A stretch of DNA of 63,974 bases, the filler included, from Olpidium bornovanus S191 (Eukaryota; Fungi; Olpidiomycota), in NCBI GenBank assembly GCA_017911155.1. It is 29 parts of 29 records of this genome, joined end to end, with 100 filler letters (N's around TTAATTAATTAA, not from the genome) between each part and the next. Parts side by side here need not be neighbours in the genome. Positions count along the whole stretch, not along the records: positions 28,669 to 31,358 come from JAEFCI010001155.1; 28 more parts are not named here. One strand, 5' to 3'. The first letter of the stretch is position 1. Every line of letters begins with the position of its first letter. Below are positions 28,495 through 32,800 of the stretch, piece after piece. Made by a program: the position numbers and the translations under genes. The notes under the pieces are model-generated. The model searched no databases, was not told the origin of the DNA, and saw only the letters and a list, made by a program, of their open reading frames with translations.

Positions 28495-29400
28495 ACGCAG
28501 CCATGCCGGGCGCGCGCACGTCTGCACCGCACGCACATCCACATCTCGTGCGGCGTCTTCTGGCCGCGNNNNNNNNNNNNNNNNNNNNNNNNNNNNNNNN
28601 NNNNNNNNNNNNTTAATTAATTAANNNNNNNNNNNNNNNNNNNNNNNNNNNNNNNNNNNNNNNNNNNNCATGCAACCATAAATATGGATTACATCCTCAA
28701 TGGGAAACTGTTTACAATGTAACCATTAAGGATATAACTTGCTTTAACTGGCAATCCTTTAATGGCTTGAGCTACTGTTTCTATGTTAACGTGTATTCCT
28801 AGAACCAAACATAAAAACAACCTTTATGCCAAATCCTTGCTTCAGCGACCCCTTTTTCCCCCCTCCCCTTCACAAGGGATATTATCGCCCTGCCGAGTGC
28901 CGTTCTGAGGAGGCGCGCCCTATCGCGCAGCCGGTGCTTTCTCGCGCGTTCTTGAAGAAATTGAGAGAGGCGAGCAAAAAGGACAGAGTTTGAAGGATTG
29001 CAGACGGCGTGCGGCGAAGGTCGCGCGTACTCCGGGGTCCTGTGGAGCGGCGGGGCATCCTGGAACCAAGATGGGGAAGGTGAAGAGCGCGGAGGGGAGG
29101 CGCCAAGGGGCAATTCCGCGTGTCCGCCGCTGAACGCTCCCACAAGCGGTTGTTTCATCGCTGCCGGCCACGGCCGGTTGATACGGACATAAACCGGCGA
29201 AGATCGCCATTTCGTGTGTTCGCATTTGTCTCCACTCGTCTTGAAGCGGTTCGGCCAGTCGGCCATTCTCAAACAGAAAGACGGGACGCCGAGTTATCCC
29301 GAACCAGATAACAGTCACAATTTAATAATCACCGAGAAAAGCCTATCTTCAAACTAATATCAGAGCGACTGTGGATAAAATAACCAAGCGGAAGGTGTTT

Positions 29401-29849
29401 CTACCAGTAGCCGTAGTTCTTTCCCTTGCCCTTGCCCTTGCCCTTTCCCTTGCCCTTGTAGAAGTTGTTGTAGTTCGCATCTTTTTTGTTGTTCTTCTTG
29501 GCGGCGTTGTTGTAGTCTTTTTTGTAAGCTTTTGTGTTCTTGTTCGTGTTCTTCTTAGCCTGGTTGTACTTAAATCTGCAGGTAAGAAAAAAAACAATTC
29601 GAGTTTAACCGGCGGTCGCACCGGAGCTCCCTCAAGTTTCCTGCCAAGATCAAACGCTCTGTACCCCTTGTTAACAGCCGCGTTGTTATTGTACTTGTCG
29701 GTTTTCACAGCGACGTTGTTGGATTTCTTCGCAGCTTTGTTGTTAGCGTTGAGGTTCTTGAGGTTCTTTCCGTAACCGGGAGCAGGAGCCGCGTACACGG
29801 TCAGAGCGACGCCGACGAGCGCGAGAATAATAACGGTGGAGAACTTCAT
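29401..29849 (-). CDS. Small secreted Lys/Asn/Tyr-rich cationic protein; complete, 2 exons (29849-29665, 29575-29401), 119 aa
   Basis: Signal peptide MKFSTVIILALVGVALTVYA. The intron gtacag...ctgcag has a polypyrimidine tract; the spliced frame is open to TAG and ends YK(GK)6NYGYW*. A TATAAG lies about 105 nt upstream. Confidence 0.88.
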
Positions 29850-32800
29850 TTTTGGTTCTGGGCTGAAGGTTTTCGGTATGGAGGAGTTTAATGTCGGATA
29901 ACCTTGGCGACGACCGGCTCTGGGAATAAGAAAATTTGCTGACGATGGCCCAACTTATATGCGCCGCCGGGAAACCGAGAATCGCGCTTTGCGGCGCTGG
30001 CGGAGCTTACCAGGAACTGTACCGAGCGGCAACGTGTTCAAAAATCAACGATGACGGCGAGCTGTAAGGTGCACGAGAAAATAAAATATCAGCAGCCGGC
30101 GATGACGCCTTTTTTTGGCTCGGCGGCACGTTTGCTGGTCACCGACGGCGCCGAGAGGGACGAAAATTACGTGTCCGTTGGCGACTCCTCTTTCGCCATC
30201 TTCCATAACGTTGAAATGTCGCGCTGCAAACTGCCGGGAACGCTGACGGCATTTGTACGCCCGTTCGCTTGCCAAAAGCACGAAAGCGCACGAAAGCACT
30301 TGCACCGCACGAAAACACTTGCATTCAACGCGGCTACGCACTGGCAGTAGAAGCACGCAAACATTCGCGTTTTGCGCTGACGCTCATTGAAGGCAAAATA
30401 GCACGCAAGAACCTACGTCAAACGTGCAACAAATTATGGGGAACCGGCCGCAACCGGCGGCGCGCGTTCAAGGCGGAGTTAAGGCGAGCGGGTTGCTGCC
30501 GCTCGCGGGAAACGTGGCGAGGGCCGTCATATCTGCAAAAGAGGTTTTGCTCGCGCGCGGCTCTCCAGCAGCGCGTCCGCGGCCGCCCTCTCGCCCGAGG
30601 GAGAAAGGGCGTCAGTCGAGCCCATCTACTTCCACGGCCTGCAAATTGTGTCGTTTTCCGCCGAATGATAAATCTACCGGCAACGCGACCAGCGAGACTC
30701 AACACGCGCCGTCCACGAATGGTAAGCCGACAGTCGGAAGCGAAGCACATTTCCTGCGCGCCGTCCGCTAGGCGCCGAAGTGGCTGCCCGCGGTACCGCG
30801 GCTGGCCTCCAAACGTGCCGTCCGTCGCGATCATTCCGGCCTGTGCCACGCGCGCTTCGGGGTCTCCGTTTCTTTCTTTTTTCTTTGCAAGCGGTGAACG
30901 AGAAACGTAAGCTACGGGCACCGACAGCCGTATGGGTTTCACTGTTGTTCCTTGGGATCGCAGCCGCCGTCCGGCAGCTCGGGCGATCCCGTGGTTGACG
31001 CCACGAAGCGGGCAGTCAGTCCGCGTAACCCCCCATTTCCAGATCTCCCGTCTGGGCAGAACAACGGCCTTGCGCGTTGTTCTTGGCTCGCCGGTTGAGG
31101 GCAATTCCTCCGCGCCGCCAAACACCCGCGAGCGGTCTGGTCTCAGGTGAGTTCTGCCTGTCCTGTCAACACAGAAGGGAACTTGCTGGTGGAAAGAGGG
31201 CACTGGTGCGGCGCCGCCGTTTGTCTGGCGTTCAACAAAGCCTCTCTCTAGTTTACATCTGCATCTGTTGTTCTTGTCTGCAGGAGCTGTCAGGCAGCCA
31301 GCTCAATGCAGAGGGAATGACTCGTTCAGCCTCAACCTACGCGGCCTAAACTAGCATGNNNNNNNNNNNNNNNNNNNNNNNNNNNNNNNNNNNNNNNNNN
31401 NNTTAATTAATTAANNNNNNNNNNNNNNNNNNNNNNNNNNNNNNNNNNNNNNNNNNNNCATGCACCAGAAAGCGACGACTGTTTCTCACTGTCGTTATCT
31501 CTGTTCGTTCGCTCCGCCTACGTCCTCTCTATCACTCTAAAAATGCATCTATGTAACTCTATCAGAATATGTATTATACGTGCCTAATAATTCAATTGTA
31601 ACTCAAATACAATTTAATCCACTGACTGTGTTATTTTAACTATTATAGTCTCTATAGTAGTAGTATTTATATTAGATCCAATTATTGTGCTATGTGTCCG
31701 CGGCAGGGGGCCGTCTTTCTCTCTTTCGCTCGTCTGGAGAACGTTCGCGCCTCAGGCACCCTGGGGAATATGCTCTTGCCAGGAGGGAGAAGGGAGAAAC
31801 CGGGCGTTCCATATATTTGAGGGGGCTTCCCGCTCGCCCGAACACGTCAAAACCCTCCTCCGCAATGTGCTTGCCGCCATACCAGTGCAGGGCAATCAAC
31901 TCCGCGCCCGCGCCTCGCGCTTTCAATTTCCAAGACGCGGTTCGCTATCTCGACAGGTTTACTCGATTTTTCCGCGAGTCCGCCCGCGTCACGTTGGCCG
32001 TTAGATTCGTCGGAGTCGCTCCGGTCCAGACCTTCATCGCCCTCACCGTCGCTTGGTCACCCTTTCTGTCGTTGCCATGCAGCGATTATTGCCTAATTGA
32101 TGACTAACAGCAGATAACCCCAGGGCGATATCCACACCCGATCTCAAAAGAAACCGTAACATTTATCTGAGAATTTTGGATTTTTGCACGTTTTTGATGT
32201 TGACGATTATGCGGCATATTTAGGGGTGGCCCTCCCCAACGCTCCCTTTCCCCTCCCGTGGCGGTCGCGGCGGTCGTCGCGCAGTCGGTAGGAAACACCG
32301 GGGTGACGATCAGCGCCGCTGCGCGCTGATGAAACGTGGCCACGCGCTGGCCGCGCCATGATGGGCTGTAACCATTTTAAAAGCCATCTGTTTTGTTGAC
32401 GCCGTTCCTCGACCAACTTCGAACGAGGCCGGCAGGCTAAGCTGCCTTCACAGAGCCGATTGCTAGCACCGAATCCGGCTTCACGTTGTACTGTGGCGTT
32501 GGCGGCTTCCGCACTTAATGCTGACGAGCCTCGACTTGTATACCTCTTTTGACCGAATGGACGCAAAAGAAATAAACATTCCCGCCCCACCCACCCCCGT
32601 GCTGGTTGATGAAAGTGCCGTACGGGTTCTGGATGTTCGATGGGGGGAAAGGGTTTCCGTGATAAGACCAGAATCCTGCCGGTTCGGGAATTAACTGTCT
32701 GTCGTTCGCGCGAAATTTTTTCCCTTGACGGCATTTTTACGCACTTGCGGGCAAAAGCACCGCGGTCGCACGGAAGTTTGCCTGTCGGTCATCACCGCTC

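Follow-up and report, generated by a model that had tools for sequence, protein, structure and literature searches.

A two-exon gene in Olpidium bornovanus S191 predicted to encode a secreted lysine/asparagine-rich polycation of a very small, uncharacterised family

The 63,974-nucleotide stretch of Olpidium bornovanus S191 DNA analysed here (the window) almost certainly contains an intact two-exon gene for a pre-protein of 119 residues, located on the minus strand of a 2.7-kb piece of the window (28669-31358; Table 1). The sequences compared leave us equally confident that this gene belongs to a very small, uncharacterised protein family, of which four other members (P0001, P0003, P0004 and P0005) were found among ~15 billion proteins, some of the searches having covered one exon or one length range only. 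A sequence-only reading of the window had proposed the gene, and its coordinates, strand, intron length and protein were all reproduced from the sequence, with the splice further backed by the collinearity of the homologues. Of the wider interpretation given in that reading, the gene model, the composition and the secretion signal stood, and the claim of novelty, the DOPA analogy, the weight placed on the C-terminal tail and the amyloid, antimicrobial and virus readings came out weakened. As to function, the composition of the protein and the biology of the parasite lead us to suggest, at somewhat less than an even chance, a disordered secreted polycation acting as an adhesive or as a component of the wall matrix.

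Table 1. Features of the two-exon gene, in positions along the window
Feature	Positions	Strand	Description
Exon 1	29849-29665	-	185 nt; start codon, signal peptide, first 41 mature residues, 2 bases of split Gly codon
Intron	29664-29576	-	89 nt, phase 2, GT-AG; GG/GTACAG ... T-rich tract ... CCTGCAG/A
Exon 2	29575-29401	-	Last base of Gly codon, 57 codons, TAG stop (29403-29401)
Predicted signal peptide, 20 codons	29790-29849	-	MK, 17-residue hydrophobic core, V-Y-A/A cleavage motif; rule-based
Hexanucleotide microsatellite encoding (GK)6	29419-29458	-	CTTGCC on the + strand, 6.7 copies; Tandem Repeats Finder
Candidate TATA element	29954-29959	-	TATAAG, 105-110 nt upstream of the ATG; consensus likeness only
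Candidate polyadenylation hexamer	29321-29326	-	ATTAAA, ~75 nt past the stop; pattern scan, consensus likeness only

The start codon at 29849 is the earliest in-frame ATG following an upstream stop, and lies in A-rich surroundings (CCAAAAATGA). Exon 1 amounts to 61 codons plus two bases, and the spliced gene to 119 codons. That this gene is beyond chance follows from its GC3 and codon bias, the similarity between its exons, the composition of the intron and the collinearity of the homologues over the junction. Read in the proposed frame, exons 1 and 2 have a GC3 of 0.70 and 0.79, respectively, whereas the two remaining frames of exon 2 have 0.27. The spliced gene uses AAC for 22 of its 23 Asn codons and TAC for all 10 of its Tyr codons. 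The mature part of exon 1 resembles exon 2, with a local alignment score of 61 that was reached by only 2 of 1000 shuffles (39 +/- 6). Enumeration of the possible splices revealed that the sequence taken out by the intron is precisely the part that departs from the Lys/Asn/Ala composition of the remainder.

The homologues speak to the junction directly. Residues 1-63 of P0001 are matched by exon 1 and residues 65-115 by exon 2, and the residue between them, Gly64, corresponds to the split codon GG/A. The ORFs called for P0001 and P0003 have no interruption, and the two are hence either transcripts or intronless copies; since they are continuous in either case, the joined reading frame is seen as a single protein. 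Two alternative in-frame donors share the same acceptor, at 29655 and 29694. They were rejected, as their products are without the conserved ...VN(Q/K)-G-F... segment, and the homologues agree with the donor at 29664. The sequence-only reading had correctly pointed out that the ORF track presents the unspliced form only, which is a 166-aa read-through ORF ending in a T/R-rich, wrong-frame tail. A mirror ORF on the + strand (29371-29775, 134 aa), which is Leu/Val/Phe-rich and runs antisense to the Lys/Asn codons, was rejected as a gene and is attributed to a complementary-strand artefact, since the homologues match the minus strand.

Relatives were searched for with the spliced protein, one exon at a time. 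An exhaustive HMMER search of 1.84 billion representatives, for which exon 1 was the only query, returned a single true match, P0001 (E 9e-6), a 115-aa protein from ENA encoded on a lone 738-nt contig. A second row, P0002 (707 aa, E 9.5e-4), was set aside as spurious, being a long multi-repeat protein dissimilar to the family. In pairwise BLASTP comparisons, P0001 was matched by exon 1 with an E-value of 4e-11 and by exon 2 with an E-value of 1e-9. A word search that started from P0001 then led to P0003, also from ENA (153 aa as called, on a 1304-nt contig), and to P0004, which is KAG5455687.1 (BJ554DRAFT_4809) and whose cluster mate P0005 is KAG5459958.1 (BJ554DRAFT_8059). The latter two are hypothetical proteins of O. 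bornovanus itself. P0001 and P0003 are collinear with the two-exon gene and 53-54% identical to it over their full length, the identity of exon 2 to P0001 being 53%. The ORF of P0003 as called begins 33 residues upstream of its likely true start (MFARYLALL...), and this extension is probably 5'-UTR.

The closest relatives of the two-exon gene are P0004 and P0005. They have in common with it the signal peptide, the mature start AAPAPGYGKNLKN, the region of the splice junction and a GK-type C-terminus, and differ from it in being partial (104 aa) and in carrying Asn where the two-exon gene has its three Asp. Both stop at ...NYGKGK, at contig ends that lie inside the GK repeat, which suggests that this repeat, or the similarity between the paralogues, breaks the short-read assembly there. 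Identity to P0004 is 77% for exon 1 and 83% for exon 2. An allele would be less divergent than this, so the two-exon gene represents a third paralogue or, possibly, the copy of a sister isolate or species. The copy is probably unannotated, as it is missing among the proteins returned by the HMMER search and by the word search from P0001.

Beyond these four relatives the searches were blank. Both exons and their relatives had no match in Pfam, where the best E-value (0.062) was far under the cut-offs; a profile search of the PDB gave a best E of 0.04, and its weak rows were judged spurious; and the ESM Atlas, searched with exon 2 and with P0001, yielded no usable match. A match to a well-characterised family, the outcome that the sequence-only reading had named as fatal to it, was thus found in none of these three resources. 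Scans of metagenome contigs with each exon gave pattern matches, of which zero were confirmed; bacterial and archaeal genomes contained neither an exact 31-mer nor anything for P0004; and viral contigs contained nothing for P0001. Searching the literature for the sequence fragments, locus tags or accessions retrieved nothing relevant. The hunt for paralogues and fungal orthologues that had been proposed earlier was successful in its first half, with paralogues in O. bornovanus; for its second half, the protein searches showed no other fungal relatives. Word searches with exon 2 and with exon 1, the latter conducted through the 166-aa read-through ORF, were both blank. The exon 1 result was a false negative, P0004 sharing an identical run of 13 residues and lying, with P0005, inside the length range of that search, and blank word searches therefore carry little weight for a low-complexity family of this kind.

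Comparison of the five sequences separates a core that is common to the family from features that are particular to the Olpidium copies. All members begin with a signal peptide that has TVxA at its end and (A/S)P(A/V)P directly after it, a motif that reads TVYA/APAP in the two-exon gene; P0001, P0003, P0004 and P0005 all keep Val at -3, Ala at -1 and the AP(A/V)P that comes next. The secretion signal proposed in the sequence-only reading is accordingly well founded by rule-based criteria, its hydrophobic core and TVxA/AP-type cleavage motif being kept in all relatives. Also common to all members are the block VN(Q/K)GFxxNQAKK(N/D)TN, which spans the splice junction of the two-exon gene, an NNF motif and a KGK. 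The C-terminal aromatic residue is W in the two-exon gene and in P0001, and F in P0003. As judged from these comparisons, positional conservation at ~55% identity is greater than low-complexity drift would leave, and the conserved block together with the aromatic columns points to binding constraints that go beyond composition alone.

Outside this core the family is far less uniform. The mature chains of P0001 and P0003 are devoid of Tyr, and Phe fills the aromatic columns of the alignment; many of the sites that are Lys in the Olpidium copies are Ala in these two; and their net charge is +11 and +9, respectively, compared with +20 to +23 for the Olpidium copies. At the position of the (GK)6 tail they read ...GFPGFKGKAFG..., with no (GK)n array. 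The array is therefore a lineage-specific expansion, and it is a recent one in view of the hexanucleotide microsatellite that encodes it. The sequence-only reading had taken this tail as a hallmark of the protein; we see in it the microsatellite expansion of a short KGK, confined to one lineage. Since P0001 and P0003 differ in just these respects, we place the extreme charge outside the family core, along with the GK tail and the Tyr content, as lineage-specific elaborations.

The mature protein of 99 residues contains 26 Lys, 23 Asn, 13 Ala, 10 Gly, 9 Tyr and 3 Asp, with zero Glu, Arg and Cys. Its net charge is +23, and it is 26% Lys, 23% Asn, ~12% aromatic and 3% acidic; a recount bore out exactly the residue numbers and the charge of about +23 given earlier. 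Hydropathy on the Kyte-Doolittle scale averages 2.34 in the signal peptide (residues 3-19) and -2.15 over exon 2. The C-terminus of the protein has no hydrophobic tail of the kind that would serve as a membrane or GPI anchor. When AlphaFold was given a six-row family alignment with P0001 as target, it returned one long helix at a mean pLDDT of 55 and no confident fold. Taken with its composition, the mature protein should behave as an extended, disordered polycation.

A further observation concerns N-glycosylation. The five family sequences, which are 21-27% Asn, contain no N-x-S/T sequon at all, where 4.6 would be expected, and 0.55% of shuffles equal this. The protein has only four Ser/Thr, with one Ser in the mature chain. 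Such a deficit fits, if weakly, with proteins that travel along the secretory pathway and in which N-glycosylation is selected against, the five sequences being related to each other.

How might a protein of this kind act? According to the reading that we prefer, the predicted mature protein would be exported by the zoospore, the cyst or the thallus, and as a sticky, disordered polycation it would bind polyanions, either the pectin (homogalacturonan) or mucilage of the host root or the wall that the parasite builds around its own cyst or sporangium. Lys side chains would provide the main binding, with stacking or cation-pi contacts at the kept aromatic positions, whether Tyr or Phe, as a secondary contribution. 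Recent changes on the Olpidium side would have brought the high content of Lys and Tyr as well as the (GK)6 tail, and with them a raised charge and perhaps oxidative cross-linking through Tyr. Electrostatic binding of polyanions is the simplest role to propose, since the naked zoospores have to attach themselves to pectin-rich roots, encyst there and then build walls. Against an adhesive, the zoospore adhesives of other organisms that we know of are large glycoproteins and not 11-kDa polycations. In addition, the distant relatives have charges of only +11 and +9 and no Tyr, so that either extreme charge and Tyr chemistry are dispensable for the function that the family shares, or this function has changed. 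The thallus, moreover, lies in the host cytoplasm, and a protein secreted from it may equally act inside the host cell.

This last point leads to a host-directed effector, which we consider unlikely, though the likeliest of the alternatives. In this case the thallus would secrete the protein into the host cytoplasm, where KK and KKNNKK stretches would take it to the nucleus or nucleolus, to RNA or to acidic phospholipids. Being small, secreted and a lineage-restricted orphan, with several paralogues and a fast-changing charge, the protein has traits that are typical of effector families, and Olpidium is an obligate endoparasite (PMC7865070). On the other side, the protein is without Cys, a known effector motif or a Pfam match, and the only public RNA of this species comes from free zoospores and not from infected tissue.

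An antimicrobial polycation, shielding naked zoospores or resting spores from rhizosphere bacteria by acting on their anionic envelopes, appears quite improbable. A secreted, Cys-free, aromatic-containing chain with a charge of +23 would suit it, and the sequence-only reading had listed it among the candidate roles. The amphipathicity of classical cationic peptides is missing, however: in no family member does the helical (100-degree) hydrophobic moment rise above composition-matched shuffles, 23-75% of which reach it, and the strand-type (170-degree) signal is confined to the GK tail, where it reflects nothing but the trivial alternation of G and K. The candidate class of linear amphipathic cationic antimicrobial peptides was rejected on this moment. 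Hydrophobic content is also very low, and the relatives have under half the charge.

Could the gene be no working Olpidium gene at all, but that of a contaminant eukaryote binned along with the genome, or a decaying, unexpressed paralogue? Zoospores that were not axenic supplied the DNA and RNA for the O. bornovanus S191 assembly, a metagenome binned by composition that has 13,695 contigs, 29 Mb and a MAKER annotation (PMC7865070); a piece of 2.7 kb is in keeping with these figures. It is through this binning that the contig is assigned to Olpidium, as the family has no other fungal relatives to anchor it; the 2.7-kb piece carries no further recognisable gene, and this copy was not found among the annotated proteins. 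We nevertheless regard such an origin as very improbable: the reading frame, the signal peptide, the splice sites and the strong codon bias are all intact, three paralogues share one bin, and the signal peptide is of the MKFS type that is typical of fungi. Its closest relatives being O. bornovanus proteins, the contig is likely to be from Olpidium, the organism that the sequence-only reading had put forward as an example.

Least probable is a virion-binding factor, a polycation of the zoospore surface that helps to hold plant virus particles, for which the circumstantial points that the family occurs in the virus vector O. bornovanus and that a polycation could bind acidic patches are set against the lack of an N-glycosylation sequon, the four Ser/Thr and the lack of a transmembrane or GPI-like tail, when the work of Kakani and Rochon reportedly implicates mannose- or fucose-bearing zoospore glycoproteins. 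A glycan-mediated receptor role for viruses is thus unlikely for this protein, which weakens the earlier suggestion of virion binding. Returning to the adhesive or wall-matrix reading, one may speculate that the family forms the surface glue of Olpidium that has long been looked for, which fixes the zoospore or cyst to the pectic root surface and helps to hold virus particles by the same electrostatic and aromatic contacts, the number of paralogues, their Lys content and the length of (GK)n tuning specificity for host or virus. We would give this bolder version of the model very little probability.

The surroundings of the gene are sparse. The other eight ORFs of the piece have no Pfam match, and an Rfam search of the piece found nothing. 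The piece both opens and closes with CATG (28669-28672 and 31355-31358), for which the chance is ~1.5e-5 and which might reflect how the contig or the piece was cut. At 31147-31283 (+) there is a 137-nt intron-like stretch, CAG/GTGAGT ... TCTGTTGTTCTTGTCTGCAG/G, with no recognisable coding frame around it; as the piece ends in ATG, this stretch may be the 5'-UTR intron of a gene that runs off the right edge. Short direct repeats occur in GC-rich non-coding sequence at 30275-30323, comprising GCACGAAAGC twice and a 19-nt unit repeated 1.9 times. The left end of the piece (28669-28800) is 39% GC, compared with 60-65% immediately to its right, and its frames are broken by stops, the longest ORF being 43 aa.

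What, then, does the gene add? The sequence-only reading had presented it as a lead to an undescribed system; this needs tempering, as GenBank already lists two paralogues (KAG5455687.1 and KAG5459958.1), both as hypothetical proteins. The two-exon gene is a complete member with a full C-terminus, in a family that otherwise consists of two truncated hypothetical proteins and two environmental sequences, and it should be useful to annotators of Olpidium. It also illustrates how Ala-to-Lys and Phe-to-Tyr changes, together with a coding microsatellite, turned a milder ancestor rich in Ala, Asn and Phe into an extreme polycation. Of the flagellated relatives of the terrestrial fungi Olpidium is the closest, and it transmits plant viruses. 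To our knowledge it is not culturable without a host, and hardly any of its secreted proteins have been studied. If the protein does act at the interface between parasite and root, it would provide an easily expressed handle on attachment; otherwise it would be one more orphan small secreted protein.

Several known systems resemble the protein in composition, and most of them part from it on closer comparison. A diatom silaffin-like protein was ruled out, as the mature chain has one Ser and KxxK spacing is not enriched over shuffles. A Kex2-processed repeat protein (KEP), with its KR/RR and LxKR sites, was likewise ruled out, the mature protein being Arg-free and having KK pairs only, five in number. 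Amyloid formation, which had been suggested from the Asn content, is disfavoured: Asn/Gln-rich, prion-like amyloid formers have few charges, and here 29 of the 99 mature residues (29%) are charged, with a net +23. Linear cationic antimicrobial peptides are like the mature protein in positive charge, secretion and freedom from Cys, and unlike it in that the mature protein is 99 residues long, has very low hydrophobicity and is without amphipathic periodicity.

The mussel foot proteins Mfp-3 and Mfp-5, likewise small, secreted, basic, Cys-poor, low-complexity chains containing Lys, Gly, Asn and Tyr, may serve as a working analogy for surface binding by cationic and aromatic residues together. 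This likeness is one of composition only, no sequence relationship to mussel foot proteins having been found. Mfp-5 contains up to 30 mol% DOPA (PMC7403305), whereas Tyr makes up 9 mol% (9/99) of the mature protein described here. Four of the nine Tyr are adjacent to Lys, as composition predicts. Because P0001 and P0003 have Phe in place of Tyr, and Phe cannot become DOPA, DOPA is unlikely to be a requirement of the family, and the analogy to Tyr(DOPA) adhesives that the sequence-only reading had drawn does not extend to the family as a whole.

A further parallel is provided by CotC and CotU of Bacillus subtilis, small Lys/Tyr/Asp-rich spore-coat proteins that are cross-linked through Tyr and have no signal peptide. 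No sequence similarity to these proteins appeared in the exon 2 word search, the HMMER search or the word search from P0001, and CotC and CotU are bacterial and very Asp-rich, whereas the mature protein is nearly without acidic residues. What the two have in common is that they are tiny, low-complexity proteins rich in Lys and Tyr, of a kind that could serve as cross-linkable coat material.
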